Source of the DNA: Mizuhopecten yessoensis
Taxonomy: Eukaryota
Assembly: GCF_002113885.1 (NCBI RefSeq)
Contig: NW_018405583.1
Span: 384,781-448,780, forward strand
Direction of reading: 5' to 3'
DNA length: 64,000 nt
The notes under the pieces: generated by a model
Database searches by the model: none
What the model was told of the DNA's origin: nothing
Seen by the model: the letters and a program-made list of their open reading frames with translations, nothing else
In this document: positions 4,430 to 52,293 of the stretch, piece by piece
Layout: every line of letters starts with the position of its first letter
How positions within the stretch are numbered: position 1 is the stretch's first letter
Position numbers and translations under genes: made by a program

Positions 4430-7400
4430 CACGTGTAGGAAATTCAAACTGTACGTTAATTTCAATATAACGGACTTCATTCTGTCCTCTGTCGTCCGTC
4501 TCAAAATTTCGACCAATCACCTAATCATACAAAAGTACTAGTTTGAATACGGTATACCGGGAAAATTTCGCCGCAGTGTAACTGTCGCCCTTTTCGCCCT
4601 CCGTAATAAGGGAGAATCTGTCACGACATTGAAAATAAATACACAACCTAATACACATAGTAAAAACATATAAAGGGCGAAATTAATACTGAGCGAAAAC
4701 CGTTTTACCAGTGAAAGGCGAAAAATTGACTGGGCGAATAAATTTCACGTGAGTAATCATTTATGCATAGCAAGAGACATGTAGGCCGAGAGTAAAACAT
4801 GCATCATTGTCATTGCGAGAAAAAAGTAAGATATGCAAGCTCGAGAAATGAAACGTGCGCTAATCATAAGAAAACTAGAATTGATTTTTACCGAAACATT
4901 TATAATATATCCTACCATTTTGAAGAATCCGCTGTCTTCTCCATAGATATGTTGTAAAACGGAGACCAATATGTGATGGTCGTATAGACGAACGTCCACG
5001 TTTTTGACCCCAACGATTGAGTCACCAGTCCTAAAAACGACAACAAGAGTTAACCGAAATGTCAACAATACCGTCATAAGAAAGTTCATATGACGATCGG
5101 GATTAAAACCTGGACCCGTATTCGTGAACCGCTCACATGTGTAAGCGTGATTCTGTGTTCAAAGCAACTTTCCTGTTGCTCGCTAAAGTGATGTTACCAA
5201 ATTAAAAAATAACTGTAAAGTAGAAAAACGATATCAGGCTTCACGATTCTCCTAAAGACTTTCATAAATACGGTAAGGTGCTCCGAAAGCGTACTATTCC
5301 CTGTAGCGCCATTCTCGATATTCAGGGGGTTACGCTCACTTTCGCTCTCTGCACCCCTGGGATATGACAGCAAAATTGAAGGCTCAGTGTGCGCCACTTT
5401 ATTGATGAGACAAGAAGACTAGTTTGATCCTTTGATATACATCAAAAGAATCGTGCGGTCACGTAACGGTAAACATTGACAGGCTTTGAAGTCGGGCGTT
5501 TCTCCTTTGTAGTCTTTAAAGGACAGGCATCAGTCTAGCGACTGGTGAGTTTTTTTACCCGAGACCAATCATACAGCTATTTTCGTGCCTTCAATTTTGC
5601 TATGACATGTTCCAAGGGTGCAGAGAGCGAAAGTGAGCGTAACCCCTGGATAACGTGGATGCTGTAACGCATTTTCTTTTGCAATAAAAGCCGAATAACA
5701 TAGTGATAGTCTAGGGTTTGTAATTGGAGTCAGTCAGTAGGCCACACGAAATGTTATTATTATTCCTTTCTGAATCAGTACAATACCATATTGGAAAGGT
5801 TGAATACTTACTGAAGACTCATGTGCTGCACGTGGCTGTTATCATTGTCGTTTACACAAATCGTGTGACCAGATAATCGTGATGACGTCAGAGAAAACCC
5901 AGCATTTTCTTTGTGTGATCTAGTTAGTTGAAACTCGATATGAGTTTGACGTTCTTTGAAGTCGTCATTCTAGAAAAACAGAATTCTTTTAAAATAAGAC
6001 TGACATTTATTTTATTTAGTTCGACATGATGTCCACTACATCACGGTACGTTTGCACTATCAATGCTTATATGCTTGAATATTTTCTGTTTAGTTCTACA
6101 TGACGTTAAATATTGGTAGATATTTTCTGTTTAGTTCTACATGACGTTAAATATTGGTAGATATTTTCTGTTTAGTCCTACATGACGTTAAATATTGGTA
6201 GATATTTTCTGTTTAGTTCTACATGACGTTAAATATTGGTAGATATTTTCTGTTTAGTTCTACATGACGTTAAATATTGGTAGATATTTTCTGTTTAGTT
6301 CTACATGACGTTAAATATTGGTAGATATTTTCTGTTTAGTTCTACATGACGTTAAATATTGGTAGATATTTTCTGTTTAGTTCTACATGACGTTAAATAT
6401 TGGTAGATATTTTCTGTTTAGTTCTACATGACGTTAAATATTGGTAGATATTTTCTGTTTAGTTCTACATGACGTTAAATATTGGTAGATATTTTCCGTT
6501 TAGTCTTACATGACGTTAAATATTGGTAGATATTTTCTGTTTAGTTCTACATGACGTTAAATATTGGTAGATATTTTCTGTTTAGTCCTACATGACGTTT
6601 AATATTGGTAGATATTTTCTGTTTAGTTCTACATGACGTTAAATATTGGTAGATATTTTCTGTTTAGTCTTACATGACTTTTAATATTGGTAGATATTTT
6701 CTGTTCAGTCCTACATGACGTTAAATACACTGTATTGGTAGATATTTTCTGTTTAGTCCCACATTACGTTAGATATTGGTGGATATTTTCTGTTTAGTAT
6801 TACATGACGTTTAATATATGTAGCTAATTAGATACTACTACTTTATTCTACCTTTGATAATTACTAATTAACCTGTTATATACCTATTGAATGAAATTGG
6901 CTCTGGGCAGCTTAGATGGGGTTTCTTTTTTGTTAGCTTACATCATGATATTAAATAACACCTTTCAGTTTAAATAAAGAATTATCATATTATTTGCAGG
7001 AGTTGGTGTAACCCTCCTGACAAATTATATATCTATTTGCTGAAATTGGCTTTTGATTCTCAACAGTGTATGGCTAGTGTGTTATACATATGGACTGTAC
7101 GGCCTGTATCTATTAATTGAATAAATCCAATATCACCAAATATTTATACAGATTACTTTATATGAATACCAGTAACGCATTGTCTAATACATTATTCACT
7201 GGAGATAATAGTCTAGTAAATATCTCAAATTAAATATCCCTAGTGAAAGGGTTACTATCTCAGGAATATTGAACAGGTCTGTTTACATCAAGGAGTTACT
7301 TCCCCTTATCCCAATCATCGTATCAATGCATAAATATATGTCTGTGTTACTTACCATCTGATGTCCCCTCAAGGAGAGGACTTAGGCAGGCTATGCCTGA

Positions 7401-9704
7401 TGTCTGATCCTATTGACTATTGCTTAAATTGTCAATAGGAAATTGTTGAAATTGAAATATATTTACACATAAGTGGTATTATATAATTAATAAAACAGAT
7501 TTTGCACAAATGATGACACTTGGAATAAGTAGTTTCTTTAATTTCAGGTTGATGTTGCTAATTTACAACACTACCTAAAAGATATATTGTAAAATATTAT
7601 AGTCCTGTAAGTATACCTGGGGTTTAATAGGCTATAAAAATTGTCATTACCACATTCTCAGGCGATCCACATTCACAATCATTGATTTCATTTTCAGAAG
7701 TATCATTGCTTGTATCGATGTGGCAATTCCCAGACTCACGTGCTACTGGGACGTGTGTAGGACTGCTTGTATGCTCCTACAAAACGACAATGGAATTTCA
7801 AAGTAAATAGATATGCAGATTGTTTGATTTTTAAACAAGAAAACGGAAATATTTCAATAACCGGACGTGTAACTTTCTAAACACAAAATGAGAAAGCAAA
7901 CATAATGAATCCAGTTAAGAGAATTGGTCGAACCTTTGTTGATTTCGTTGCGTTAGTAAATATATCAAGTAATAAAAATACAATTTGAATTTGCAAAAGG
8001 GCAAATCTAGAGCCGCCGCGGTAAAGTTTCCACATCCTGTATGTATGCCTAATGATATATAAAACGACCAGTACCTTGTCTCCGGTTGGTACACTTCCAC
8101 GAGCATCGGATAGGTTGGCATAATTATCAGAGTTTGTGTCAGGGTTGTTATAGTCAGAGTCGGCACGCGGCATCTCATGTTCTACTGGACCGCTTGTAGG
8201 CCTACGCGTCGTACCCTAGACAAAAAAAAAATGTTATCACGAAAAATCTCAGAATTCGTTATATTATATAAATACTACATTTATTTGTATATGACAGTGC
8301 CTAGGATCAGCCCGAGGATATCACTGTCACCCTCGGTTTCGACGCCGGTGACAGTGATACCCAAGTGGTGACTCTAAGCACTGTCACACTCTTATGAATG
8401 TAAAAGATATTTTATTATACTGGAAGTCAATATGGCAGCTGAAACAAACCGTACGCACATCTTCTTTGCGCGCGATTACTACTTTGCACAGTCACATATG
8501 CTGTCACTCGTTGGTAGGGCGTTGGAAAGCAACCTTCCATTGACCCAATTTCAAAGTGAATGTAACAGTGTGAAATGAACAATTTGTCTCTACCTATCAG
8601 ATTACAAGGTTTAGCTAGAGATATAATTATTTGAAATGTCAATTTCAGAATTTTAATGTTGCTTTGAGACAATAGAGAGACAATACTTCACAATATCGGT
8701 ATTAACAGCGCATACACACCAGACTTATATACACTGTTATCTAAGCACAAATGGAACGAAATAAATTTTGCATATATAATGTTTCATATATTTAACGCAC
8801 GACGAATATATGTGCGTATAGGTTGACAATAAAAAGGGCGACATACCGTTGACGTAAAGTCGGATTCGTTCACAGACAATGTTGAGATCCTGCTTATGAC
8901 ATTGTCAGAGCTGAAGTCAGGCTCTGTTGTAGGCGAATAGTTAGGCACAGCAAACCCGAAAAACTGAAGGAAAAGTGGTCTTTGTCAACGTCATTTACGC
9001 CGTTGTTGTACTTCTTTAATCATCTGACTACGGAATTATGCTTGCCAACAGTGCGTTTCAAACTTTGATCAAATAGGTTAAAATTATGTTTACAGAATGT
9101 CTTAACAATAACAAAACAAACGTAGTGTAAAGGTTATCAAAAGGGCAAAGCACCATTCCATTTTTTATTTTTCCGACTCGTTAAGATTTATGACAAGGTT
9201 TTTGCCTCCATGGCAGCTGATTAAGTGACATTACTTGTGTTTGGTGAAACAGCTTTGGTATTTGTACTTTATTGTGTGAAGTAATTTCATTCAGTAAATA
9301 GTAGCTGCGTTAAATTTTAATGAGCTATAATAACTTAAAAAGTAGAAAAAAAATACGGAATTGACTGGAATATATCATTTACCACTTGGTGTATAATATA
9401 GAGATAACTTAAATAAATTTAATGCAATGACGAAATACAGAAATAGAAAACACTTTAGGAAGAAAATATATAACGAAATTAATGCAAAATCAAAAAAATA
9501 AGTCAAACGTTTTCGTCCCTATTCACTAATTCATATAGTGTTATCTTTATCTGGAAGCATTGTTGAATACATTTAATTACCAATGCTTTTGTGTGTATTT
9601 TTATTCTTTATGTAACATAATGCACTGTTTCTAGAATCATTAAACTCACTCAAGATACTAAAGAAACATACCTCATCGGAAAATATCTCGACATCTGCCA
9701 TCAT
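4430..9704 (-). CDS. PDZ + IL-1-like protein, type 2 copy A (5' partial: N-terminal and PDZ exons only; trefoil exons absent from the window)
   Basis: Exons (minus): 9704-9672 (MMADVEIFSDE), 8963-8847, 8215-8075, 7776-7651, 5969-5812 (..ENAGFSL..), 5030-4916 (TGDSIVGVKNVDVRLYDHHILVSVL..), 4520-4430 (VIGRNFETDD..). Colinear with copy B and open. In copy B the next exon follows the 44-bp minisatellite, which here abuts the gap and the window start. Confidence 0.8.
6079..6815. repeat. 41-bp minisatellite (about 18 units) in a type-2A intron
   Basis: Tandem units of TATTGGTAGATATTTTCTGTTTAGTTCTACATGACGTTAAA, degenerating towards 6815. Confidence 0.95.
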
Positions 9705-15091: not shown

Positions 15092-15483
15092 TGTCGGTTC
15101 CGTTGATTCAACATTATACACTCGGTGAAATTGTTCACATATATTTTTCGAATGACATATATTTCGTATTGGTTTAACTTGAGATAACTTCGTCAAAAAA
15201 TGTACAGTTTTAGTATATATTAATATGTGATGGCGGATTTATATGGCAGTCAAAAGTCAGGAGTTGTTCTCGTCCGCTTAGCCCAATTGGCTTGTAAACT
15301 TCGGGTTATCAAATGTTGAAGCCTGTAGCGCGCTTATATCCCATTTAAAATAGCAAGGCATTTTTTACTTTTTTTATCTATGAATCTAGACAGCTGTCCC
15401 AAGTGTTGAACTTCCTCTGTTAAAGGTCTTTGGTTAAAAGCTAGGAAGTAACTTATAGAAAATGATTAAGTTGTACGAGTCCT

Positions 15484-18400
15484 TTATAGAGAATAAATGT
15501 GAAAAGTTGAATTTAATGCTGAAAAGGGAACAGAAGAGTCCGAAGAATCTTTCAATTTCATCTCCTTCTTTGTGTTATCCCATGTGAGGCACATGCCTGT
15601 TTATAAACAAATAAAAAGAATGAATCACTTTACATACATGTAGCACCTACTTCAAAATTCGAAATCGATGCCAAAAGCCAAACAAAGTTAACATTTACTT
15701 CAACATTTCGTCCATTCAGGACGACTCATCAGACGTTCTAAAGATCACATGAACAAAAACCCATATCCTAAGTATTTAAAAACATATACAGAAATATCGC
15801 TTAAGGGGAATGGTATATATATAAACTTTTATTATGTAACTATCGTATAGCTTTTAGATTCATTTCTTTTACAAAATTTCATTTAAACCACTCTAGAATA
15901 AATTTCAGCGCTAACTTAACGGTCAACATCGGTAGCACAGATAGTCTATTTGTCAGATAATGATGTATATTTTTATGTTAAATCGATGAGATAATGGGGA
16001 AATATGAACAAACGAACGATTTACATGGAGATTCGTAAAAGGATAAGGAAAAAAGACCAGGTGTTCCAGAAGGAAAAGCGTCTTCTACTTCATCGACCGC
16101 ACTTGTGTAAATCTAGATCAGATCTAAATAATGTCACTTTCTATAATAGATAAAGAGGTCGAGAAGGAATGTCTTTTCCCGCACCACAAACGTTATCAAA
16201 TGATTTGAATTTACATGAACGGCTTCAGTGCATATTTTTCTGCTGAAGTGTTTTAATTGAAAGTCAAAAGTACCTTTTATAGGCCATATTTGACAGGTCA
16301 ACTTACCTTTTAAGATGACAGATTCAAACATATATTCATTTTTTTCCCTCACGTTCTTCAATTTCAAGAGGAAAAACCTAGGATCAGCTTCTTGTAAAGA
16401 CGTCATCGATGTTATGTCCTCCGAGCCAACGGGGCAATTCTTCGTTTTGAAAGAGAAAATTACATTTTGTTATCAATTAATGTTTACATATAGAACCATC
16501 ATGTGAATTAAGGTAGTTGTTTGCTCATCGGGCCAGTATAGCCGTGCACAACATCTGATAATGTGTATCATGCAACTGCTCATTTGTAAAAATAAATTGG
16601 AACAGGCAAGGAATGAAAATGAGAATACTGCTTTAATGGCTGGGACGCGCTCACTAGTATATCAACGTTGAGCGTGGTCAGGGGCTTGATGGTTGCCTGT
16701 TCGCATGTTACAAAACTATGAAAACCAAATTTACCTCATTACCTAAATGATGTTCATTCATTTAGTTGCATTTTGTACGAAGTTTGTTGTGTGACATTTT
16801 TGAAAGTTAAGATATTTCAATCAGATAGTGCCTGTGTCTAATGTTATCCATCATGCAATGATAACACCTGTCAAATCAAGGAAAGCATACCGGTTGCTAC
16901 TATAATTTATATTTAACATAAATCAGTCTAAGTTACTATGTTAAGTTTCTCTTAATTTATAATTAATCACTTAAATTAGTTACATGCAGATTACATGAAT
17001 AATTACATTGGGTTCGAGATCACTTTCCCTAAGTTAAATACTAGCACTTAATTGTTTTTTAACAGTCGATTTAAGATAATATGTATCTGTTATCAACATG
17101 AAACTTACCGAGAGGTCAACAGACGACCGGTTTTTGACTGAAACGTACTTCTCCGTTCCTACCGGCTGCAGAATACATAGGAAGCAACTTTGATTTTCAC
17201 TATGCTGTTTTTGAAAACCATGAAATATACTTTTTCTGAAATGAACTGAAAGAAAATAAATTTTGTTTTTGCCATTACTGCTTTTTCAGCTTTAAGAAAT
17301 ATGGTCTCTGCATTCTGTCATCATTCAAGTAAATCGAAAGTTATAGTATCATGTGTTTTGTTATATGTTCCTTTATTTAAATATAGATAACAAAGTTACC
17401 AACTTCAATATTGATTGAGCCTCAATATTACTTTTTGTTCCCAATTAGAACTGTCTAACACAGAATTGACATATATTTGAGACTATTATGAAGGAATGCC
17501 TCATCACATGTTGGTCTGGTTTTTAATTGCTATCAACTCAACCAAACAAAAACACAAACAATAAATAAAAAATATATAGAACATTTGAAATAGCGAAATA
17601 CTATATAACCAACAAACCCCGGCTAAATAGCTAGACAACTAGGCCATTGAAGCCTGAGGTAATGTGATATATTACATGATGTGTCGGTTCGGGAAGGGAG
17701 ATTACTCATGGTCAGCTTTCCGTCTGTCCCACATTCCAGGTAAAGCTGGGATATCGGCGTGTCTATAGCTATCAGACATACATCTGTCCCCTTATGATGT
17801 ATACAGTAGACAGCGGAAAAACCAGAGAATCTGCTCAAAATTGTGGTTCTTGTAAACAAAGCAAAAGCTGAGCCACCACCTACAAAACACAACCAGTCTT
17901 ATTTTTTTAAACGGTTTATATCTTCTGTAATTAACAGAATTAAATATCATTTAAAAGGTCCAGCTGCACCATTGTGCATACAGACCAGGAGTTGAACTTT
18001 AGATTAACTTTTTTCGACTTTAAGCATTTTCCTTTTTTTATATTACACATTTAATGGTACTCTTATCTTAATGCATATATTACAAAGTAGTAAAACGTGA
18101 TGTTGTCACTGAAAATCACATATTTTCCCAATTGAATTATGTATGTAATATTATAGGCCTTAAACATGCATTTTATTCAATATTTTCATTAAAGATATCT
18201 ATTCCTTTTTGGTTCTCTCTGCAAATATTCAAAAACAAAATCTAATTTACGAAAGATGTTTATTATGGCATAAATATTTTTCTATTCAGATAATTTAAAA
18301 AAGATCTATGAAATTAAAATCTCTCGTTCACGATGATGAAAGTTTACCCCGAGATATCAAATAGTCCACCTCTATTTCAAAGGTCGTAACGGTGTCTTTA

Positions 18401-21400
18401 TCTGCATCGGTCCATTCTTTTCTTTCAATTACCTATAATTAGAAAAATTCTTATAAGAGACGAGACATAGTTGTGTAGTTGGAGCGGTTTTAGGATGTCC
18501 TATAAGAGATGAGTTGTAGTTGTGCGCTTGTAAGGATTTAAGGATGTCATATCAGAAATGAGACATAGTTGTGTAGTTGGAGGGGTTTTATGATATCCTA
18601 TAAGAAATGAGACAAAGATGTGCAGTTGAAGTGGTTTAAGGATGTCATATAAGAAATGAGGTATAGTTGTGTAGTTGGAGGGGTTTTATGATGTCCTATA
18701 AGAAATGAGACAAAGTTGTGCAGATGAAGTGGTTTTAGGATGTCCTATAAGAAATAAGGCATAGTTGTGCAGTTGGAACAGTTTAAGAATGTCTTATAAG
18801 AGAAGAGTTATAGTTGTGTGTGTAGTTGGAACGGTTTCAGGATGTCCTATGAGAGATGGGGTATACTTGTGTAGTTAGAGAAGTTTTAACCAACCCAATA
18901 ATGTTGACCAATACTTTAATTGAGTGGAGACACTCATTCTCTTGTTTCCAAATATAATCACAGGCTTGGCGGTAAAACTACGTTATTGAGCAAAGTACCA
19001 TTTTAACGCTCGTCTCAATTCCGTCCCAACAAGTAGGTATAACACTGTATGAAAATACCTCATTAGAGCGGATATCAATCATGTCAAGTATCCTGAACAC
19101 TGAACCTCGTTGAATATGATGAGGCTTTCATCATAATAACTGTAGTCACTTTGGACTAAAATATAAATTTTACCCTTATTGTATACATAGGCGTATATTG
19201 TCGTGACAGTCTTATTATCATATATAGACAGGCAGAAAATAACAAACCAGACATGGCCCAATTGAAATTAGACCACCTGTCCCATGGTTACTTAAGGATT
19301 TTGTACCGCTACAAAAAAAACTGTCAATATGTAATGGAATGTGTTTTCCCAGCATGGCTACAGCTTTGATAGATTATTACTGAAACGAACCCCATGCCTG
19401 GCGGGTATTTAATGCAAAACAAGGGATGATGAAATAAACTATATATAATCGACAACAGTGTATGAATGTAAAAATACAAAGTGGTAATTGAATTCTGGAC
19501 CTCAGGTTGTTATAATGTCGCTCTAACCAATAAACGAACGTGTTTGTTTACCAATAGCACAGCAGCTATATCTAAAACAAACTTAAAGATAGGTTACTGT
19601 GTATACAAAAAAGGAACCCTGGTGGAATTTTCAGTGTTTTGCATTCGATGGAACAGGAATGCTCAAGTGGTAAGATTTAAAAGTTCTTTGGGATACAAGG
19701 ATATATGGACATGTAAATCGTCAACTTCACTCTCGTGCGTTCTAGCATTCGATCAGAGCTTAATCTCAAACAGCAGCGGCGATAAGCTATTATTAATACA
19801 CAATGACCAATCAAATTTGTTGTAGCAAACACATCCACATAAACCGCCCATTATTAACAACAAACAGACTACACATTAGGTCATGATTACAAGCGTTGCA
19901 GACGCTCTCCCTAGAAACAAATTATTTTGATCATGGGAACATCAGAAATGGTAAAAACGCAACGAAAATAAAATCTTAAAAAAAGAGAAAGTAAAATATG
20001 AAAAAAGTGAAAGGTTCAAGAAAAACTGAAACAAAACGGCCCTCATAATATAAATACTAAGCCAAACCTCCTATAAAATGTAGTTTGCTATAATTACAAT
20101 GGACAGACGACTTCGTTCTGGGTGAAACATCTGTTGGAGAAACTCCACAACTTCATGATGTTCCCTGCAGCTTACAGCGATGTTATTGATGGCTAAGAGT
20201 TTGTCATTTTCCCTGTAAGATAATTTAAAGAAAAAACATAAATTCATATGTAAAAACGCCTTTCATAAATGAGAAAATTGTTCTACAACTAATCCCGGCA
20301 TTCTAACTAGGTAGAATTGTCTTTTATTGAGGACACCTTTGTCTCGTCTTTGCATTGGTTAATGCAAATGAGCATTTACTTTTGGCGAACGTTTTACGTT
20401 CCGATATCAAATGTCCTCAACAGAAAAGAACCATGTCTTCAGAATTTTTTTCAAAAGTACTAAAAACATATTAGTTTTTATTGTTATACTTATGAGAAAT
20501 GCTCATGTGTAACATTCACATATAAATAATGAAATGAAATTTTCATTTAGTTTATATTTCAATTAAAAGAAAAAGAAAAAATTCCAATGTTTGTTTGCTA
20601 TTTACAAGGTTAAATGTATCATATCGGACACTAGATAACATTACAATCAACGCAAATCAAAACTGATAATACGCTTAGCACTACGAAAGTCTTGGACAGT
20701 TATAGCCGTATGATTGGTGAGTTAGACAATACTTGATAATTTGACATGAAGATAGTGTGCTAGTAAGAGGGTTTCCTAGTATAAAAAGTATTATTCAGGC
20801 ACTCAAATAACAACGAAAATGTAACTAAGCAAAATGGCAAATGATATCAAAGGTATCCGGAAATGACGACATAGCATCGGCATATAAATTGCATAATGGA
20901 AAAACGGCAACTGACACCATTTACTCACGTTAGTTGTAATTCGGAAACTATGTAGTTATTTAAATCCAGTTCTACGATCCTAAATCCGGATTCACTTTGC
21001 TTAATCTTGAATCCAGCTTCCACTAACTCTCCAGCAGCCGTCTTGATCCAAATATCTGACTTTTTCCCACACAACCCATCGGTTTCTTTTACTTTATCCT
21101 TCAAAAAAAATCGAGACGTAGATTTCTTCCATTTGTATAAAAATTTGTATAACGTTTAAATCGTATACTGTGCAGATTGAAAATCAAAGAAATATTTATA
21201 AAAGGCAGGTTTCCACAGTTTTTCTCGTTGGGATTGCCCCAGCTGATAGCGCAAAGCCTTTTACCAAGACGGGTTCGGACATGAAAAGGTATGGGTCACC
21301 TTCCCAACCAAACATGTTTTCTCCGGACACTCCGGATTCCCCCAACATTAAGACCCCTTGCGTGCTTCCATGTACACTTTGGGCAACAAATGTGACCATA

Positions 21401-21934
21401 ATAGCTGATTGTTTTCTTTTCATATTTTTTTGTAAAATAAATAAACTTATAATTTAACTTACATCACATGCATACAGTCGTGTCAAATATAGATATGATC
21501 TCATATAGTTAATTTTACAATTCCATACGGAGCAGGATAAGGGTTTTTATAACTTTTAAGAGCTCTGAGAATGACGCATACACACCTTGACAAAAGTCAC
21601 AGCTTTGTGTGGTTTATAAAAAAGTGGACATGTTAACGGGTTTGGTTTTAGAGTCCGAGACTAAAACATGTACACTTAAACTTAAAAATGACTAGTTTGT
21701 TGTTTGGCTGGCAGACACGGAAGTCCGTCTGACTATCTTTTATATGTCATACAGATTGCTCATTAAAAGGAAAATAATCTGTCTTTGTGCAATTATCATC
21801 CATTTCGTATGAATTCTAACTTTATGATAGCATCGAGTGCCAAGTAATTGATTAGGCCAATATCTTACCTTAATCGATGTATCGGAAGGTAGCTTGTTGT
21901 GATCTGATACAGGATAGTGTAAAATGCCACCCAT
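15484..21934 (-). CDS. PDZ + IL-1-like beta-trefoil protein, type 1 copy A (8 coding exons, 340 aa)
   Basis: Exons (minus): 21934-21869, 21098-20929, 20212-20098, 18432-18348, 17879-17676, 17245-17109, 16439-16307, 15596-15484. All introns are GT-AG with compatible phases (0,2,0,1,1,0,1), giving a 1023-nt open frame. Protein: MGGILHYPVSDHNKLPSDTSIKDKVKETDGLCGKKSDIWIKTAAGELVEAGFKIKQSESGFRIVELDLNNYIVSELQLTENDKLLAINNIAVSCREHHEVVEFLQQMFHPERSRLSIVIERKEWTDADKDTVTTFEIEVDYLISRGGGSAFALFTRTTILSRFSGFSAVYCIHHKGTDVCLIAIDTPISQLYLECGTDGKLTMSNLPSRTDTSFHFRKSIFHGFQKQHSENQSCFLCILQPVGTEKYVSVKNRSSVDLSNCPVGSEDITSMTSLQEADPRFFLLKLKNVREKNEYMFESVILKGMCLTWDNTKKEMKLKDSSDSSVPFSALNSTFHIYSL*. PDZ hallmarks: AGFKI loop and NDKLLAINN..V....HHEVVEFL. 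IL-1 hallmark: DPRFF...YMFESVILKGMCL. Confidence 0.85.
18460..18885. repeat. ~49-bp minisatellite in a type-1A intron
   Basis: Units like GAGACATAGTTGTGTAGTTGGAGGGGTTTTATGATATCCTATAAGAAAT. Confidence 0.9.
21228..21372 (+). mobile_element. Degenerate copy of the SINE at 29223-29440 (also at about 51458-51600)
   Basis: Shares GGGTCACC..CC.AAC..GTTTTCTCCGG.CACTC.GG.TTCC..C.ACATTAAGA.CCC with the intact copy. Confidence 0.7.
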
Positions 21935-34400: not shown

Positions 34401-37400
34401 TAGTCCTACATGTTGTTAGATATTGGTAGATATTTTCTGTTTAGTCCTACATGTTGTTAGATATTGGTAAATATTTTCTGTTTAGTCCTGCATGTTGTTA
34501 GATATTGTTAGATATATCTATTTAGTCCTACATGATGTTAGATATTGGTAGATATTTTCTGTTTAGTCCTACACGACGGTCAATATTGGTAACAGGTATT
34601 TTAGATAACTGAAAGTTTTCATGCACAATTTCTAAACTACGTTAAAATAAATTCATACCATAATGTTTCTATTAACAGATGAAACAAGGCAAACTATTCT
34701 TATTAATCTTTTGTTTAGCAAGCTGATTCTAATTATAGTAGGAAGCATACTCTGAGACTGTAATATCTCCTACTTTTGATTCTTCAGATAATTCAAATTG
34801 AAAACAGATATTTGGGGCATTTCATTTATAGCCTTAGTGTTAATCGGAATGAAATGGTAAGTTTGTTTTTGAGCACAGAAAAGTTATTAAAAACTGATTT
34901 TACGAGCTTTCGAAAACGTCTGTTTCCTTTATCAAGCAAAAAGTTTAAATGACCGGTGCCTCGACTCTTAATCGCTGAAAATATGTCACTAAACTACAAT
35001 GTGCCGAATCGGTCAAGTCAGCTGTCAGCAAATAAAGATATATTTTGTCCATATAGCACTCTAACAATGCAGCCAGCCAGAGGGACGGGTGATATATGTA
35101 CACATACAATTTTACATTTTGTTTCATGTTATATGCATTTAAGCTTTATAACCCCCGAAGAACTACAATGATACAGCAGTACAATATATACTTAATGTAA
35201 TATGATATGGAATCAATTAGATACTGCTACTTTATTCTACAATTGGTAATTACTTATTTACCTGTTATATACTTATTGAATGTGTGAATTTGGCTCTGGG
35301 CAGCTGAGATGTGTTTTTTTTTTCTTTTAGCTTATATGACGATATGAAGTAACTCCTTTCAATTTAATTAAAGAATTATCATATTATTTGCAGGAGTTGG
35401 TGTAACCCTACTTCCAAATAATATATCTAATTGCTGAAATTGGCTTTTGATCCTCAACAGTGTATGGCTAGTATGTTATATATATGGACTGTATGGCCTG
35501 TATCTGTTTGGAAAATAAATCCAATATCACCAAATATGTATACTCAACAGTTTACCTTATATGAATACCAGTAACGCATTGTCTAATCCTTGAAATTATT
35601 CACTAAAAATAATAGTCTTGTAAATATCTCAAATTAAATATCCCTAGTGAAAGGGTTACTATCTCAAGGGTATTGAACAAATCTGTTTAAATCAAGGAGT
35701 TATCCCAATCATCATATCCTTACCACCTGATGTCCCCTCAAGGAGAGGACTTAGGCAGGCTATGCCTGATGTCTGATCCTATTGACTATTGTTTAATTTG
35801 TCAATAAAATTTGTTAAAATTGAAATATATTAACACATTCCGCCCCTTAGTGGTATTAATATAGAATATAGTTAAGAAAACAGATTTTGCGCAAATGATG
35901 ACACTTGGATAAAGAAGTTTCTTTAATTTCAGGTTTGATGTCTTGAATTAACAACACTACCTAAAGGGGCAAACACGGAAGCAGCAGATATATAGTCAGT
36001 ATAGTTCTGTAAGTATACTTGGGGTATAATAAGCTATACAAAATGTCATTACCACATTCTCAGGCGATCCACATTCACAATCATTGATTTCATTTTCAGA
36101 AGTATCCTTGCTTGTATCGATGTGGCTATTACCAGAGTCACGTGCTACTGGGTGGTGTGTGGGACTGCTTGTATGATCCTACAAAACGACAATGGAATAT
36201 CAAGGTCAATATCTGATATGCAGATTGTGTGATGTCTAAACAAGAAAAACGGAAATTTTTCAATTTCCGGACGTGTACCTCTCTATGCCATATGCATAAA
36301 CACAACATGAGAAAGTACACATAATGAAATCGAAAAATTAAGACAATTGGCCAAAACATTTGTTTCTATTTTTGTGTGATTAAATATATCATGTAACAAA
36401 AATAAATATAATTTGAATTTGCAAAACGGCAAAGTTAGAGCCGCCGCGGTAAAGTTTCCACGTCCTGTATGTATGCCTAATGATATATAAAATGAACAGT
36501 ACCTTGTCTTCGGTTGATACACTTTTACAATCATCCGATAGGGTGACAGAAGCGTCAGAGTTTGTGTCAGGGTTGTTATAGTCAGAGTCGACATGCGGCA
36601 TCTCATGTTCCACTGGACCGCTTGTAGGCCTACGCGTCGTACCCTAGACAGAAAAAGACTATTATCACGAAAACTCGCAGGATTCTTAATATTATATAAA
36701 TACTGCATTTATTTGTATATGACAGTGCCTAGGATCACCCCGAGGATATCACTGTCACCGGAGTCGAAACCGAAGATGACAGTGATATGTTGTGTAAACT
36801 ATAAAAAACGGACAAACTGACACGGAATTTTTTTAAGACGTACAAGGAGTATAAAAACTAGGACCAGGTGTTCCGAAAGGGAAAGCGTCTTCTGCTTCAT
36901 CTATGACACCCATCATACCAATATTGGCCATATCTACACAATGTAACGTTCCACAAGGTGAAACCCGGGCGAATGTAGTATTTATTTTATTATACTGAAA
37001 GTCAATATGGCAGCTGAAACGAACCGTACGCACATCTTTTTTGCGAGCGATTACTATTTTGCACTGTCACACATGGTATCACTCGTTGGTAGGGCGTTTG
37101 GAAGCAACCTTCCATTGACTCAATGTCAAAGCGAATGTAACAGTGTGAAATGAATAATTTGTCTCGACCAATCAGATTACAGGGTTTCGCTTGAGATATA
37201 ATTATTTGAAATGTCAATTTCAGAAACTTAATGTTGTTGTGAGACAATAGAGAGACAATACATCACAATATCGGTATTAACAGCGCGTAAACACCAGACT
37301 TATATACACTGTTATCTAGGGCACAAATGGAACGAAATAAATTTTGCATTTATGACGTTTTATATCTTTAACGCACGACGAATATATGTGCGTAAAGGTT

Positions 37401-38307
37401 GACAATAATAAGGATTACATACCGTTGGCGTTAAGTCGGCCTCGTTCACAGACAACGTTGAGATCCTGCTTAGTACATTGTCCGAGCTGAAGTCAGGCTC
37501 TGGTGTAGGCGAATAGTTAGGCACAGCAAACCCGAAAAACTGAAGGAAAAGTGGTCTTTGTCAACGTCATTTACGCCGTTGTTGTACTTCTTTAATCATC
37601 TGACTACGGAATTATGCTTGCCAACAGTGCATTTCAAACTTTGATCAAATAGATTATAATTATATTTAAAGAATGTCAAAACCGAAACAAAACAAACATA
37701 GTGTAAAGGTAACTTATATTATCAAAAGGGCAAAGTACCATTCCATGTTTTATTTTTTCGACTCGTTCAGATATTTATTTTGATTTTATGACAATGTTGT
37801 TGCCTCCAGGGCAGCTGATTATATGACATTACTTGTGTTTGGTGAAACAGCTTTGGTATTTCTACTTTATTGTGTGAGGTAATTTCATGAAGTATAAAAT
37901 TGCCACGTTAAATTTTAATGAGCGATAAATACTTTAAAATTAGAAAAAATAAAGGAATTGACTGGAACATATCATTTACCGCTAGGTTTATAATATAGAG
38001 ATGACGTAAATAAGTTAAATGCAATGACGAAATACAGAAATAGAAGACACTTTAGGAAGAAAATCTATACCAAAATTAATGCAAAATGAAATAAAAGTCA
38101 AACTTTTTCGTTCTTATTCACTAATACAGATAGTGTTATCTTTACCTGGAAGCATTGTTGAATACATTCACATACCAATGTTTTTTGTGTGATTTATTTT
38201 CTTTAGGGTACATAATGCACTGTTTCTAGAATCAATAAACTCACACTGTTAATCACGATTATATAGAAACATACCTCATCGGAAAATATCTCGACATCTG
38301 CCATCAT
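28441..38307 (-). CDS. PDZ + IL-1-like beta-trefoil protein, type 2 copy B (11 coding exons, about 445 aa, long acidic S/T/P/D-rich N-terminus)
   Basis: Exons (minus): 38307-38275, 37539-37423, 36643-36503, 36178-36053, 34103-33946, 33261-33147, 32751-32661, 31728-31543, 29764-29619, 29177-29063, 28550-28441. All GT-AG, with an in-frame TAG upstream of the ATG. Protein: MMADVEIFSDEFFGFAVPNYSPTPEPDFSSDNVLSRISTLSVNEADLTPTGTTRRPTSGPVEHEMPHVDSDYNNPDTNSDASVTLSDDCKSVSTEDKDHTSSPTHHPVARDSGNSHIDTSKDTSENEINDCECGSPENVNEDLKERQTHIEFQLTRSHKENAGFSLTSSRLSGHTICVTDNDNSHVQHMGLQTDDSIVGVKNVDVRLYDHHILVSVLQHIYGEDSGFFKMVIGRNFETDDRGQNEVRYIEINVQFEFPTRGDTILRMTVDVVTCPYLTFTKIICVEFKGSKVCWIKNNDQHLSVQDKQLTTSNPFTGKSDVKFQFQWWTFHGLEARTVSNSMCPPVFFCAFRSLDSNTFVTVQSGNRVGIGESSSLSRDISTVRKPDCRFFKVRLMKNHKYLLESLVYEGVYLRCGKNGLSMKKPKSDLNHFYQISPELQFDIFT*. 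The last 7 exons have the same phases as type 1. A possible extra 55-nt exon (35778-35724) is unresolved. Confidence 0.82.
29223..29440 (+). mobile_element. tRNA-derived SINE (V-domain-like) in a type-2B intron
   Basis: A-box GGTGGCGCAGTGG, B-box GGGTTCGATTCC, central GGGTTTTCTCCGGGCACTCAGGTTTCCTC. Confidence 0.8.
29461..29634. repeat. 74-bp tandem repeat (about 2.3 units) that duplicates an exon end and splice donor
   Basis: TGTTACTTACTCCTATC.. at 29461, 29535 and 29609; the last unit overlaps the 3' end of exon 29764-29619. Confidence 0.9.
30956..31314 (-). mobile_element. TRIM-like miniature LTR retroelement with tRNA-derived LTRs
   Basis: Direct repeats 30956-31068 and 31160-31314, both with TG..CA ends. 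The 91-bp interior has a PBS-like TGGTGTCCATGGCTC after the 5' LTR and a polypurine tract AAAAAGAGGGGAGTAG before the 3' LTR (minus strand). Flanks CTAC/CTTC form an imperfect 4-bp TSD. Confidence 0.75.
31742..32049. repeat. 44-bp minisatellite in a type-2B intron
   Basis: About 7 units, some with 1-bp deletions; abuts the acceptor of exon 31728-31543. Confidence 0.95.
34144..34590. repeat. 41-bp minisatellite (about 11 units) in a type-2B intron
   Basis: Diverged variant of the 6079-6815 array. Confidence 0.92.
36860..36970 (+). mobile_element. Short dispersed repeat remnant (Penelope-like terminus); also at about 9885, 16055, 38530 and 46355
   Basis: Shared motif GGTGTTCCG.AAGGG.AAGCGTCTTCTG.TTCATC. 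The family label is from memory. Confidence 0.45.
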
Positions 38308-44640: not shown

Positions 44641-45531
44641 TTATTGTTTAGGAAGTACACGCCTTTATCATGTTCCATTATAGATGTATTAGATGCCCTA
44701 TCACTTGTAAATCTTTATTTGACACAGGTCGTTCATTCATTTGACGTAACAAGAATTGAATACCTTTACCAAGGTCAACCATATCATTGGCTGTTATATT
44801 ACACCAAAATAATCATGTCTATTGTGTATTATTTTCCTTGTCAGGACAGCGAGCAATTTTAACAAAGAAATAATTGCATCAGAACCTTATGGATATTCAT
44901 TAAAACTTCTGAATAGTTCCCTCCGTGACGTCAAAGACATTCCCTTAAAGGAAAGGTTTGTTTTATATCTTTTACATTATTGAAAGAAAACCTGTCATTT
45001 TGTAACGTTGGTTCCTAAAAAAATCAATCCAATTATCCATATGGTTCTTTTTTGACTGTGTACATATCACTTTCGGAATTCGATAAACGGACATAGTTTT
45101 TAATTACATTTCTCCAACTCCATAACGTGTGAAAACTTTGTTATAAAGAGGTGATGGCACTGAAAGAGACAGTCAGAAAAACACGCATAGAGACACAGAG
45201 AAAGACTATAACAGCTCTTAGCCCTTTAACATATTCAGAAGATGTGTTAATTTTGTAGACAATCATGTTGACGGAGAAAAAACAACACAACACAGACAAT
45301 GCTAAAGTAATGATCAGTAATATATTATTCATAACACAAATGACAACAGGAATGACTTCAAAATTTAAACGGTAACAAAAGTGATGTTACAATATATTTT
45401 ATAATACATTTTTGTTACGTTTTTATCTATGAATCTAGACAGCTGTCCCAAGTGTTGAACTTCTTCTATTAAAGCTCTTTGGTTAAAAGCTTAGAAGTAA
45501 CTTATAGAAACTGATTAATTGTACGAGTCCT

Positions 45532-48500
45532 TTATAGAGAATAAATGTGAAAAGTTGAATAAAATGCTGAGTCCGTAGAATCTCTCAATTTCATCTTCTT
45601 CTTTTTGTTATCCCATGTGAGGCACATTCCTGTTTATAAATAAACAAATAGAATTATTCGATTTAAATACAACGTTATGTAGCACCTACTTCAAAATTTG
45701 AAATCGATGCCAAAAGCCAAACAAAGTTAACATTTACTTCACCATTTCGTCCATTCAGGACGACTCATTAGACGTTCTAAAGATCACATGAACAACAAGG
45801 TTACCGCGAGCGGTATATAATACGCCCGTCACTCATTGAATGAGCAGTTGTTTGTATGATTGAAATATATGAAGTATTTGTGAGTAATTGATATTAAAAG
45901 AGAAATCATTCAACATAACTGGTAGATCAATGAGTGCAATACAACATCATCGAACGCATGCATCGCATTAATGAAACCAAGGGGAATAACTCCAATAATT
46001 ACGGTCGGATAATGGCGGTTATCGAACTTGTCCGAGGTTTCATGGTAATTAACCTTGTTGTGAAGTTTGAAGTTAATCCGTTAATAATNNNNNNNNNNNN
46101 NNNNNNNNNNNNNNNNNNNNNNNNNNNNNNNNNNNNNNNNNNNNNNNNNNNNNNNNNNNNNNNNNNNNNNNNNNNNNNNNNNNNNNNNNNNNNNNNNNNN
46201 NNNNNNNNNNNNNNNNNNNNNNNNNNNNNNNNNNNNNNNNNNNNNNNNNNNNNNNNNNNNNNNNNNNNNNNNNNNNNNNNNNNNNNNNNNNNNNNGGGAA
46301 ATATGAACAAATGAACGATTTACATGAAGATTCCTAAACGGATAAGGAAAAACGACCAGGTGTTCCAGAAGGATAAGCGTCTTCTACTTCATCGACCACA
46401 CTTGTGTAAATCTAGATCAGATCTGAATAATGTCACTTACTATAATAGAGAAAGAGGTCGAGAAGGGAAGTCTTTTCCTGCATCACAAACGTTATCAAAT
46501 GATTTGAAATTACGTGAACGGTTTCAGTTTTCTTCGCTTAATTTTTTAATTGAAAGTCAAAGTACCTTTACTATGCCATATTTTACAGGTCAACTTACCT
46601 TTTAAGATGACAGATTCAAGCACATATTCATTCTTTTCCCTCACGTTCTTCATTTTCAAGAGGAAAAACCTAGGATCAGCTTCTTGTAAAGACGTCATCG
46701 ATGTTATGTCTTCCGAGCCAACGGGGCAATTCTTCGTTTCGACAGAGAAAATTACATTTTGTTAGCAATTAATGTTTACATATAGAACCATCATATGAAT
46801 TGAGGTAGTTGTTTGCTCATCGGGCCAGTATAGCCGTGCACAACATCTGATAATGTTTATCTTGCAACTGCTTATTTGTAAAAATAAATTGTAACAGATA
46901 ATGAATGAAAGTGAGAATACTGCCTTACTGGCTGGGACGTGCTCACTAGTATATCAACGTCGAGCATGGTCAGGGGCTTGAAGGGTGCCTGTTCACATGT
47001 TGCAAAACAAACTATGAAAACCAAATTTACCTTCTTACCTAAATGATGTTCATTCATTTGGTTTTATTTTGTACGAAGTTTGTTTTGCGACATTTTTGAA
47101 CGTTAAGATATTTCAATCAGATAGTGCCTGTGTTTAATCTTATCCATCATGCAACGATAACACCTGTCAAATCAAGGAAAGCATACCGGTTGCTACCATA
47201 ATTTGAATTTAACATCAATCAGTCCAAGTTACTATGTTAAGTTTCTCTTAATTGATAATCAATCACTTAAATTAGTTACATGCATATTACATGAAATAAT
47301 TACATTGGGTTTCTCTAAGTTAAATACTCTGGCAATGACAGTAAAAAATACTAGCACTTAATTGTTTTATAACAGTCGATTTAAGATAATATGTATCTGT
47401 TATCAACATGAAACTTACCGAGAGGTCAACAGACGACCAGTTTTTGACAGATACGTACTTCTCCGTTCCTACCGGCTGAAGAATACATAGGAAGCAACTT
47501 TGGTTTTCACTATGCTGTTTTTGAAAACCATGAAATATACTTTTTCTGAAATGAACTGAAAGAAAATAAATTTTGCTTTTGTCATTATTGCTTTTTCAAT
47601 TTTAAGAAATATGGTCTCTGCTTTCTGTCATCATTCATGTAGATCTAAAGTTATATTATCATGTGTTTTGTTATATGTTCCTTTATTTAAATATAAATAA
47701 CAAAGTTACCAATTCAATATTGGTTGAGCCTCAATATTACTTTTTGTTCCCAATTATAACTGTAAAATACAGAATTAACATATATTTGAAATTATTATGA
47801 AGGAATGCCACATAACATGTTGGTCTGGTTTATAATTGCTATCAACTCAACCAAACAAAAACACAAACAAATATATAAAAAATATATAGAACATTTAAAA
47901 TAGCGAAATACTATATAACCAACAAACCCCGGCTAAATAGCTAGGCAACTAGGCCATTGAAGCCTGAGGTAATGTGATATATTACATGATGTGTCGGTTC
48001 GGGAAGGGAGATTACTCATGGTCAGCTTTCCGTCTGTCCCACATTTTAGATAAAGCTGGGATATCGGCGTGTCTATGGCTAGCAGACATACATCAGTCCC
48101 CTTATGATGTATACAGTAGACAGCGGAAAAACCAGAGAATCTGCTCAAAATTGTGGTTCTTGTAAACAAAGCAACAGCTGAGCCAACACCTCCTACACCT
48201 CCTACAAAACACAATCAATCTCATTTTTCTAAACGGTTTATATCTTCTGTACTTAACAGAATTAAATATCATTTAAAAGGTACAACTGTACCATTGTGCA
48301 TACAGACGAGGAGTTGAACTTAAGAGTAATTTTTTTTCGACTTTCAGCATTTTCCTTTAATATATTACAGATTTAATGGTACTCTTATCTTAATGCATAT
48401 ATTGCAAAGTAGTAAAACGTGATGTTGTCACTGAAAATCACATATTTTCCCAATTGATTTATGTATGTTATATTATAGGCCTTATGCATGCATATTATTC

Positions 48501-51500
48501 GATATTTTTATTAAAGATATTTATTCCTTTTTTGTTCTCTCTGCAAATTTGCAAAAACGAAATCTAATTTACGAAAGATGTTTATTATGGTATAAATATT
48601 TCTATTTAGATAATTTAAAAAGATCAATTAATTTGTTTATCGGCTCTGGGTCTACGAAATTAAAATATCTCGTTTATGATGATGAAAGTTTACCCCGAGA
48701 TATAAAATAGTCCACCTCTATTTCAAAGGTCGTAACGGTGTCTTTATCTGCATCGGTCCATTCTTTTCTTTCAATTACCTATAATTAGAAAAAAACCGTA
48801 TGAGAGACGAGACATAGTTGTGCAGTTGAAGTGGTTTAAGGATGTTATATAAGAAATGAGGTATAGTTGTGTAGTTGGAGGGGTTTTAGGATGTCCTATA
48901 AGAAATGAGACAAAGTTGTGCAGTTGGAGCGGTTTTAGATGTCATATAAGAAATAAGGCATAGTTGTGTAGTTGGAGCGGTTTTAGGACGTGCTATAAGA
49001 GATGAGTTGTAGTTGTGCGCTTGTAAGGATTTAAGGATGTCCTATAAGAAATAAGGTATAGTTGTGTAGTTGGAGCGGTTTTAGATGTCATATAAGAAAT
49101 AAGGCATAGTTGTGTAGTTGGAGCGGTTTTGGATGTCATATAAAAAATAAGGCATAGTTGTGTAGTTGGAGCGGTTTTTTGGACGTGCTATAAGAGATGA
49201 GTTAGTTGTAATTGTGCGCTTGTAAGGATTTAAGGATATCCTATAAGAAATAAGGTATAGTTGTGTAGTTGGAGCGATTTTTGGGATGTCCTGTGAGAGA
49301 TGAGGTATACTTGTGTAGTTAGAGAGGTTTTAACCAACCCAATAATGTTGACTAATAATTTAATTGAGTGGAGACACTCGTTCTCTTGTTTCTATATATA
49401 ATCCCAGGCTTGGTGGTAAAACTACACTATTGAGCAAAGTACCACTTAAACGCTCTTCTCGATTCCGTCACAACAAGTAGATATAACACTGTATGAAAAT
49501 ACCTCATTAAAGCGGATATATTTTACGTCAAGTGTCCTGAACACTGCACCTCGTTCAATATGTTGAGACTTTCATCATAATTACTGTAGTTACTTTGTAC
49601 TAGAATACAGATTTTACCCTTATTGTATACGTAGTGTATACTGTCGCGACAGTATTATTGTTATATCTAGCCAGACAAAAAAATAACACACCAGACATGG
49701 CCCGATCGAAATAAGACCACCTGTCCAATGGTTACTTAAGGATTTTGTACCGCTACAAAAAAATGTCAATATGTAATGGAATGTGTTTTCCCACGAAAGT
49801 GTTTGTTTAACAATAGCACAGCAGCTATATCTAAAACAAACTTAAAGGCAGGTTACTGTGTATACAAAAAAGGAACCCTAGTGGAATTTTCAGTGTTTTG
49901 CATTCGATGGAACAGGAATGCTCAAGTGGTAAGATTTAAACGTTCTTTGGGATACAAGGATATATGGACATGTAAATCGTCAACTTCACTCTCGTGCGTT
50001 CTAGCATTCGATCAGAGCTTAATCTCAAACAGCAGCGGCGATAAGCTATTATTAATACACAATGACCAATCAAAATTGTTTTGGCAAACACATCCACATA
50101 AACCGCCCATTATTAATAACAAACTGACTACACATTAGGTCATGATTACAAGCGTTGCAGACGCTCTCCCTAGAAACAAATTATTTTGATCATGGGAACA
50201 TCAGAAATGGTAAAAACGCAACGAAAATAAAATCTTAAAAAATGAGAAAGTAAAATGTGAAAAAGTGAGAGGTTCAAGAAAAACTGAAACAAAACGGCCT
50301 TCATAATATATATAGTTTACTATAATTACAATGGACAGACGACTTCGTTCTGGGTCAAACATCTGTTGGAGAAACTCCACAACTTCATGATGTTCCCTGC
50401 AGCTTACAGCGACGTTATTGATGGCTAAGAGTTTGTCATTTTCCCTGTAAGATAATTAAAAAAACATAAATTCATATGTAAAAACGCCTTTCATAAATGA
50501 GAAATTGTTCTACAACTAATCCCGACATTCTAACTGGGTAGAATTGTCTTGTATTGAGGACACCTGAATCTCGTCTTTGGTTAATGAAAATGTGCCTGTG
50601 CTTTTGGCGAGCGTTTTACGTTCCGAGACCAAATGTCCTCAACAGAAGAGATATATGTCTTAAGAAAATTTTAGATTTAAAAGTACTTAATAATATGATT
50701 TTGTATTGTTATACTTATGAGAAATGCTCATGTGTAACAATCACATATAAATAATGAAATGAAAGTATCTTTTAGTTTAGATATCAATTAAAGGGAAAGG
50801 CTAATTTTCCAATGTTTGTATGCTATTTACAAGGTTAAATGTATGATATCGGACACTAGATAACATTACAATCAACGCAAATCAAAACTGATACTGCGCT
50901 TAGCACTTCGAAAATCTTGGACAGTTATAGCCGTATGATTGGTGAGTTAGACAATACTTGATAATTTGACATGAGGACAGTGTGCTAGTAAGAGTGTTTT
51001 CTAGTATAAAAAGGATTATACGGGCAGTCAAATAACAACGAAAATGTAACTAAGCAAAATGGCAAATGATATCAAAGGTATCCGGAAATGACGACATAGC
51101 ATCGGTATATAAATTGCATAATGGAAAAACGGCAACTGACACCATTTACTCACGTTAGATGTAATTCGGAAACCATGTAGTTATTGAAATCCAGTTCTAC
51201 GATCCTAAATCCGGATTCACTTTGCTTAATCTTGAATCCAGCTTCCACTAACTCTCCAGCAGCCGTCTTGATCCAAATATCTGACTTTTTTCCACACAAC
51301 CCATCGGTTTCTTTTACTTTATACTTCAAACAAAATTGAGACGTAGATTTCTCCCATTTGAATATATACATATATAACAACATTTTTAATCGTCATCTGT
51401 GCAGATTTAAAATCAAAGAAATATTTATAAAAGGCAGGTTTCCACGTTTTTATCGTTGGGATTGCCCAGCTGATAGCGCACAGGCCTTTCACCAAGAAGG

Positions 51501-52293
51501 GTTCGGGTAGAAAAGGTATAGGTCACCTGCCCAACCAAACATGTTTTCCCCAAACACTCCGAATTCTCCCACCATTAAGACCCCCTGCGCGCTTCCATGT
51601 ACACTTGGGGAAACAAATGTGATTATTATACCTGATTGTTTTCTTTTCATATTCATTGTAAAATAAAACAAATAAAAATTCAATTTACATCACATGCATA
51701 CAGTCGCGTCAAATGTAGATATGATATCATTGAGTTAATTTTTACAATTCCATATGCAGGAGGATTAGGGTTTTTATAACTTTTAAGAGCTTTGAGAATG
51801 ACGCCTACACACCTTGACAAAAGTCACAGCTTTGTGTAGTTTATAATAAAGCGGACATTTTAATGGTTTGGTTTTAGAGTCCGAGACTAAAACATGTACA
51901 CTTTAAAAGCAGTCTCGTTTATGCTTGGTTTATAGCAATAATAGGAAAACGTTGACATTTACAACAATTGTGTATAAATTGTGGCACGACGACTATTTCA
52001 AGCTCTCAAAAATGCCTAGTTTGTTGTTTGGCTGGCAGACACGGAAGTTCGTCTGACTATCTAGTATATGTCATACAGATTGTTATTGCATTTCATTAAA
52101 GGGGGAAAATCTGTCTTTGTGTAATTGCCATCCATTTTGTATGAATGCTAACTATATCATAGCATCGAGTGCCAAGGAATTGCAAGTTCAATGTCTAATC
52201 TTATTCATGATAAGGCCAATATCTTACCTTAATCGATGTATCGGAAGGTATCTTGTTGTGATCCGATACAGGGTAGTGTAAAATGCCAGCCAT
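45532..52293 (-). CDS. PDZ + IL-1-like beta-trefoil protein, type 1 copy B (8 coding exons, 339 aa)
   Basis: Exons (minus): 52293-52228, 51323-51154, 50444-50330, 48778-48694, 48201-47986, 47555-47419, 46731-46599, 45629-45532. Splice sites match copy A. Exonic indels versus copy A keep frame (+12 nt GGVGGVGS; -15 nt in the last exon, GMCLTWDNKKKKMKLRDSTDSAFYSTFHIYSL*). Several substitutions are synonymous (e.g. TAT/TAC, TCA/TCG in the start exon). An assembly gap lies in the last intron. Confidence 0.85.
45793..46088 (+). mobile_element. Helentron/HINE-like non-autonomous insertion in the last intron of type 1B (runs into the N gap)
   Basis: Starts with AACAAG at the point where homology to copy A (about 15755) breaks; absent from copy A. 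Confidence 0.45.
48805..49330. repeat. ~49-bp minisatellite in a type-1B intron
   Basis: Homologous to 18460-18885, with more units. Confidence 0.9.

Follow-up and report, generated by a model that had tools for sequence, protein, structure and literature searches.

Does a run of minus-strand exons in the Yesso scallop, Mizuhopecten yessoensis, encode cytokines of the IL-1 kind? The exons lie in a window of 64,000 nucleotides (scaffold C2256:384781-448780), which is the whole stretch of DNA that we analysed, in a short-read assembly of 988 Mb and 82,659 contigs that is heavily gapped around the locus. One exon of the window matched a RefSeq protein of this species at 95% identity. An original prediction, made from the letters of this AT-rich window (GC content ~0.34), proposed a hidden cluster of genes whose products join a PDZ domain to an IL-1-like domain. 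Exon models rebuilt from the raw sequence give four genes in the minus-strand order A', B, A, B', and the best explanation, which we consider likely, is a tandem array of IL-1anc genes that encode leaderless PDZ-IL-1-trefoil proteins. IL-1anc proteins combine a PDZ domain with an IL-1 trefoil and have been described recently (Fontenla-Iglesias et al., bioRxiv, July 2025, PMC12338702; Nat Ecol Evol, September 2026, PMC13736523). They are defined by a length below 500 amino acids (aa), an (F/L)ES motif in strand 9, the lack of a leader and conserved intron phases; they occur across Eumetazoa, and BLAST and HMMER fail to find invertebrate IL-1 homologues (PMC13736523).

All introns of the rebuilt models are GT-AG, and the predicted products of 340, 339 and ~445 aa were recovered independently. 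The gene A product is letter-for-letter that of RefSeq LOC110449157 (P0006), and the gene B product is identical to isoform X1 of LOC110449154 (P0013). Gene A' yields 339 aa from the ATG at 52293, which is the start first proposed, and 349 aa with an upstream exon (53949-53922); the longer form is identical to isoform X1 of LOC110449155 (P0007). The cluster is not hidden, because RefSeq already carries all of the gene models, but the expectation that annotation would leave them nameless was right, and all four are called "uncharacterized protein". The fourth copy, B', had been called partial. Seven of its exons are indeed all that the window holds, but the gene is apparently intact: it leaves the window at the left edge, its four trefoil exons sit 4-12 kb further left (L021, L019), and the frame is open across all 11 exons. 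Its RefSeq model (LOC110449141, P0012) is truncated at 261 aa, presumably due to gaps. RefSeq also lists X2 isoforms of A' (P0001, 311 aa; 46872-47057) and B (P0008, 394 aa; 29550-29618) that read into an intron. Both end past the second trefoil exon, without the (F/L)ES exon and the final exon, and are therefore incapable of forming a complete trefoil.

The proteins share one layout. An N-terminal tail, ~35 aa long in type A (A and A') and ~140 aa long, acidic and of low complexity in type B (B and B'), precedes a divergent PDZ domain; a short Asp-rich linker then leads to a C-terminal 12-strand beta-trefoil. The lengths of 340, 349 and 445 aa are all below 500. As predicted, a signal peptide appears to be absent: by a hydropathy heuristic, no 10-residue stretch within the first 40 residues of nine family members exceeds a Kyte-Doolittle mean of 1.45, and none of the nine has a hydrophobic leader.

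The trefoil half carries the argument for IL-1. An AlphaFold model of P0006 residues 30-340, built on 10 sequences of both types, has 12 strands after the PDZ-like part, with a predicted local distance difference test (pLDDT) score of 70-84 in the trefoil core and a mean of 62; a model from five type A sequences had a mean pLDDT of 35 and was unusable. At the level of this model, the beta-trefoil fold of the C-terminal ~170 aa is certain. Its best structural matches are IL-18, then IL-33, IL-1alpha and IL-1beta; score and coverage both favour the IL-1 family, though not decisively. The exon with DPRFF..ES, part of the proposed strand 8-12 signature, maps to trefoil strands 8-9 of the model. 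Gene A has FES, the other three genes and every orthologue have LES, and xES is invariant in 10 of 10 pectinid proteins; FES of P0006 (residue 297, model residue 268) lies inside the ninth trefoil strand, in agreement with the IL-1anc definition.

Comparisons that go beyond the model of this one domain point the same way. The top row of an Atlas shape search is a 356-aa chordate 'Interleukin-1' (PF00340) cluster that aligns with model residues 6-310 and thus with both domains. In language-model features, the whole protein is nearest to an echinoderm PDZ-protein cluster (0.96) and to two chordate PF00340 clusters (0.95). The 356-aa cluster is the nearest neighbour by shape and among the nearest by features; from its length, we guess that it is of the fish nIL-1F kind. 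For the C-terminal domain by itself, the nearest neighbours are IL-18, IL-1 and IL-33, and each of the ten best family-bearing matches belongs to the IL-1 family or clan.

A number of results weigh against this identification. Pfam IL1 (PF00340) has no match at E <= 10 on any exon or on 10 full-length proteins, a six-frame scan of the whole genome with it gave two weak matches elsewhere and none in the window, and no IL-1 chain was matched in profile searches of PDB; profile searches thus returned PDZ, weakly, and were silent on IL1. The model rests on just 10 sequences at its mean pLDDT of 62. A wide structural search left IL-1, ricin-type and FGF-type trefoils tied within 1 Z, and discrimination between IL-1 and FGF or ricin-type folds amounts to ~2 Z units on a model of that quality. 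The language-model score of the C-terminal domain, 0.87, is under the 0.9 line below which a match is a lead only. Even for the PDZ half, the Pfam profiles PF00595 and PF17820 reach 12-18 bits, against cut-offs of 23-27, on the exons and the 10 full-length proteins.

Could the C-terminal domain then be a generic beta-trefoil, of FGF, ricin-lectin or convergent origin, with some other function and no homology to IL-1? Among the Foldseek matches listed, all are either beta-trefoils or carriers of trefoil-type domains, and FGF-derived Symfoil proteins top them by E-value, with Symfoil, IL-18 and HA33 within a few-fold of each other. Structural scores below the best match are 15.5 for IL-33, 15.5 for HA33 (131-134 aligned residues), 15.2 for Symfoil (124 aligned) and 15.0 for IL-1beta, and the silence of Pfam IL1 fits a generic trefoil as well. 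Set against this, every family-bearing language-model neighbour is of the IL-1 family, (F/L)ES falls in strand 9, and the two-domain shape fits the chordate PF00340 cluster. Pfam FGF and ricin profiles have no match at E <= 10, no QxW repeats were seen, and neither a profile nor the best structural match places the domain with FGF (PF00167) or ricin-type proteins. We therefore regard a generic trefoil as very unlikely, and continue with IL-1anc as the preferred assignment.

The N-terminal half supports that assignment in its own manner. All 39 matches of a PDB profile search (E <= 10) are PDZ domains, although weak ones (best E 0.0096, profile positions 5-95), and the predicted PDZ-like domain is echoed by the sub-threshold Pfam matches. 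The model of this half follows the order beta-beta-beta-alpha-beta-beta-alpha-beta, which is PDZ-like, at pLDDT 66-80. PF13180, the PDZ profile of the IL-1anc screen (PMC13736523), has no match on the exons or the 10 full-length proteins. The evidence thus supports a divergent PDZ domain, recognizable by fold or sequence signature and not by the curated Pfam threshold.

Types A and B are only ~25% identical, but the core of type B matches a type A profile with 119 bits (E 8e-39), collinear from PDZ to C-terminus. From the first PDZ exon on, the two types share every intron phase (2, 0, 1, 1, 0, 1), with the last intron five codons past FES. In an alignment of 10 pectinid proteins of both types (A3), RG, two cysteines (C..C), F..FHG, D.RFF and Y..ES are invariant. 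In the protein database, a type A profile found relatives only in pectinids, namely Pecten maximus, Ylistrum balloti and Argopecten irradians; type B proteins of the same genera were retrieved only once the gene B exons had joined the query alignment. Each of the other pectinids yielded a single gene of each type. Judging from these sequences, A and B are old paralogues, both found in four pectinid genera. Their adjacency is seen in this window only, although near-consecutive LOC numbers hint at adjacency in Ylistrum.

Two features of type B proteins were noted at their ends. The N-terminus of gene B (38275-38307, 37423-37539) carries a motif, (E/A)(I/L)FSDEFFGF.VP, that the four pectinid type B proteins all conserve and that could be a short linear motif; the acidic tail behind it evolves fast, with a ratio of nonsynonymous to synonymous divergence (dN/dS) of 0.73. 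At the other end, the gene B reading frame meets a TGA (28441-28443), while B' and the orthologues in Pecten, Ylistrum and Argopecten run seven residues further (..TSNGNALM-like), which leaves B with a slightly shortened C-terminus.

How did a single pair become four genes? Self-BLAST reveals a tandem segmental duplication in which 3603 to ~24000 is 87-91% identical to 31841 to ~54141. A and A' are 93% identical, with a synonymous divergence (dS) of 0.074 and a dN/dS of 0.39; dN/dS is 0.44 between B and B' and 0.28 in the folded part of B. The B-A pair thus seems to have been copied once in the Yesso scallop, by a segmental duplication of ~29 kb at dS 0.07-0.09. Each of the four has retained an open frame, and purifying selection on them is moderate. 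Against the scallop genome, the type A profile finds A, A' and one 403-bp orphan contig only; on this contig (C50775:293-403), the DPRFF..ES exon of type A occurs once more (E 3e-12). An unplaced haplotype or a collapsed fragment is the probable explanation.

In a gapped, short-read assembly, two divergent haplotypes of one B-A pair might also have been scaffolded in tandem, which would make the four-gene cluster partly an artefact. N runs (2653-3602, 46089-46295 and 3652 N immediately left of the window) interrupt the region, single Ns at 24131 and 32050 lie near the unit borders, the other pectinids gave one gene of each type, and one duplicate at this locus is clearly artefactual: positions 1-2652 repeat three B' exons, the two PDZ exons and the linker exon, as found by tblastn. 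We consider this copy, which is 99.9% identical to its partner, very probably an assembly artefact. Identity between the true paralogous units reaches only 87-91%. Together with the gaps, the near-perfect copy is likely to be the reason for the truncated LOC110449141 model. The larger units differ by 9-13% in introns and by up to 24% downstream, which, with their dS, is in our own judgement far above allelic variation. Large indels set them apart, including a 74-bp repeat that is present in 2.4 copies in one unit and at least 43 in the other, and RNA reads from one animal fit B over B' at four of the five differing sites of an exon. The single N at 24131 is intergenic, and the one at 32050 falls within an intron of gene B spanned by spliced RNA reads. 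Tandem scaffolding of two haplotypes is consequently very unlikely, and a real duplication is the reading that we retain.

One gap falls within a gene. On both sides of the A' gap, the sequence aligns in the same order and orientation as gene A, which has no gap there (46296-49199 with 15997-18858; 45410-45795 with 15361-15756), and the 293 bases beside it (45796-46088) are without counterpart in gene A. The split Gly codon across the gap is in frame, the reading frame is unaffected, and the exons on either side are connected in the RefSeq X1 model, so continuity of A' across 46089-46295 is supported but not proven.

Transcription was examined in four M. yessoensis RNA sequencing (RNA-seq) runs mapped to 28350-34349 in gene B. 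Two of the four contain spliced reads at the joints 28550|29063, 29764|31543, 31728|32661 and 32751|33147, with CT..AC ends on the plus strand. RNA-seq had been proposed as the check on the junctions; it bears out these four, and two others of gene B, 29619|29177 and 33946|33261, are below the listing threshold in the same mapping. Gene B is spliced and is expressed at a low level. In all four runs, reads also pile up at 31150-31349, 29150-29349 and 33350-33950 with loose ends and mixed letters. These pile-ups in gene B introns are dispersed repeats transcribed elsewhere, and most of the depth in the mapped stretch comes from repeats; the first of them overlaps an element that was earlier called TRIM-like.

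By analogy with homologues, leaderless pro-forms of the scallop proteins would be made in the cytosol. On cell damage (or via pores) or on caspase activation, the PDZ-containing pro-part would be removed or the protein released, with processing at the Asp-rich linker, and the extracellular trefoil would then act on an Ig-TIR (IL-1R-like) receptor to start MyD88/NF-kB-type signalling. In A and A' the linker sequence is EWTD-A, and every type B protein has ETDD or ETDE at this place. The linker is conserved in type B and variable in type A, the Pecten type A protein in alignment A3 having no Asp at the position; a caspase site here would be putative. Two further points count against the scheme as a whole: lamprey IL-1anc is not cleaved by caspase-1 (PMC13736523), and secretion, cleavage, receptor binding and immune induction in molluscs would have to be carried over from homologues.

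A contrasting possibility is that these are true IL-1anc homologues whose role is intracellular, in PDZ-mediated scaffolding or signalling, and not that of secreted cytokines. PDZ domains are typically intracellular scaffolding modules, and the scallop proteins have no leader peptide, but mammalian IL-1beta, IL-18 and IL-33 are likewise leaderless and intracellular until they are released. Full-length IL-1anc is cytoplasmic or nuclear with no known export route, and functional data on the family come from sea urchin and lamprey (PMC13736523); the literature on molluscs yielded none. In sea urchin, however, IL-1anc is immune-induced and one protein is caspase-cut just before the trefoil (PMC13736523), and the Asp-rich linker stands at the equivalent place in the scallop proteins. 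A purely intracellular role is on balance possible, if doubtful, and release as a cytokine is the reading that we prefer.

Proteins of this architecture are thus known, as the original prediction said of teleosts and invertebrates. Like IL-1anc, the scallop proteins have an N-terminal PDZ domain, a 12-strand IL-1-type trefoil, the strand-9 (F/L)ES motif, fewer than 500 aa and no signal peptide; the trefoil is spread over 3-5 exons (four in scallop), there are several genes per bivalve, and BLAST and Pfam IL1 miss them. For each bivalve species examined, that work reports several genes, among them PmaxIL-1.1 to 1.3 (Pecten maximus) and CvirIL-1.1/1.2 (Crassostrea virginica) (PMC13736523). The screen behind these names used PF13180 and PF17817 (PMC13736523), and the scallop PDZ escapes PF13180; the A/B pair, the recent duplication and the micro-exon repeat described below are likewise absent from the paper. 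M. yessoensis is not named in its main text. The Pecten orthologues of our genes are LOC117342765 and LOC117342269, which may be among the named PmaxIL-1 genes; the trefoil of PmaxIL-1.1 spans aa 126-290, which fits neither type A nor type B.

The teleost protein of this kind is nIL-1F, a PDZ-bearing IL-1 of lumpfish (PMC7144542, as cited in PMC13736523). It too is leaderless, with the PDZ domain ahead of the IL-1 trefoil, but the fish proteins match Pfam IL1 and the scallop ones do not, and identity is undetectable beyond motifs. Human IL-18, IL-33, IL-1alpha and IL-1beta (4ekx_D, 5vi4_A, 5uc6_A, 1i1b) are also leaderless, with a pro-part N-terminal to the trefoil; they are 12-16% identical to the scallop proteins, and mammalian pro-domains are not PDZ. 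By these comparisons, the four genes belong to the published IL-1anc family. The proposal made for this locus was correct, but the high novelty claimed for it does not hold, because the family was published in 2025-26. What is new is local: the A/B pair, the duplication specific to the Yesso scallop, and a minisatellite that covers exon and intron sequence in the type B genes.

This 74-bp tandem repeat combines the last 24 nucleotides of a trefoil exon with the start of the next intron. Gene B has 2.4 copies, with two extra in-frame 24-nucleotide units flanked by splice sites (29568-29545 and 29494-29471), and B' has at least 43 copies (L021 1-3313, continuing into L019). In B', 32 units keep AG..GT borders and a stop-free 24-nucleotide segment encoding GGNRVGIG-like octapeptides. 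The RefSeq models skip the micro-exon units, and reads of the four RNA-seq runs do not support them. Both type B genes have a separate tandem repeat, with a 41-bp period, in the intron that precedes their first PDZ exon (6079-6817, 34143-34591); it is longer in B'. A more far-reaching proposal, which we hold unlikely, is that types A and B were missed by the published screen because their PDZ escapes PF13180, that the scallop repertoire is correspondingly larger, and that the minisatellite could feed cassette micro-exons, and with them a varying number of GGNRVGIG units, into a trefoil loop. If this were true, an ancient A/B pair would exist on top of the PmaxIL-1.1-like type.

Table 1. Positions of the four genes, their exons and associated features in the window
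Feature	Position	Strand	Description
Gene A	15484..21934	-	Type A, LOC110449157; 8 coding exons, 340 aa
Gene A exons	21934-21869, 21098-20929, 20212-20098, 18432-18348, 17879-17676, 17245-17109, 16439-16307, 15596-15484	-	
Gene A PDZ-coding exons	21098-20929 + 20212-20098	-	Sub-threshold Pfam PDZ_6 and PDZ; PDB profile; model
Gene A linker exon	18348..18432	-	End of PDZ, Asp-rich stretch, conserved EIEVDY..RG; gene B equivalent 32661-32751
Gene A exon with DPRFF...EYMFES	16307..16439	-	Trefoil strands 8-9; equivalents A' 46599-46731 (LES), B 29063-29177 (LES)
Gene A'	45532..53949	-	Type A paralogue, LOC110449155; 9 coding exons, 349 aa
Gene A' exons	53949-53922, 52295-52228, 51323-51154, 50444-50330, 48778-48694, 48201-47986, 47555-47419, 46731-46599, 45629-45532	-	
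Gene B	28441..38307	-	Type B, LOC110449154; 11 coding exons, 445 aa
Gene B exons 1-6	38307-38275, 37539-37423, 36643-36503, 36178-36053, 34103-33946, 33261-33147	-	
Gene B exons 7-11	32751-32661, 31728-31543, 29764-29619, 29177-29063, 28550-28441	-	
Gene B'	4430..9704	-	Type B paralogue, LOC110449141; 5' seven exons inside the window
Gene B' exons in window	9704-9672, 8963-8847, 8215-8075, 7776-7651, 5969-5812, 5030-4916, 4520-4430	-	
74-bp tandem repeat	29458..29632	-	Last 24 nucleotides of trefoil exon 29764-29619 and start of its intron
Near-perfect copy	1-2652 vs 3603-6254		99.9% identical, across 950-N gap 2653-3602; self-BLAST, tblastn
Assembly gap	46089-46295		207 N, inside last intron of A', between exons 46731-46599 and 45629-45532

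The window showed no other host genes. A 162-aa open frame on the plus strand (62889-63377) has reverse-transcriptase motifs (..FADDTKLY..) and, by eye only, resembles a fragment of a retroelement of the long interspersed nuclear element (LINE) type. A repeat-protein match (P0003, E 5e-9) was judged irrelevant to the PDZ-IL-1-like genes.

The larger picture of IL-1anc, as published in 2025-26, is unchanged by this locus. Four scallop genes that RefSeq leaves uncharacterized can now be named and assigned a function open to test, and a bivalve of commercial importance joins the species suited to work on IL-1anc, for example on haemocyte induction, caspase cleavage at the Asp-rich linker and Ig-TIR pairing. 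In pectinids, the family consists of at least two deeply diverged, neighbouring types with a recent lineage-specific duplication.

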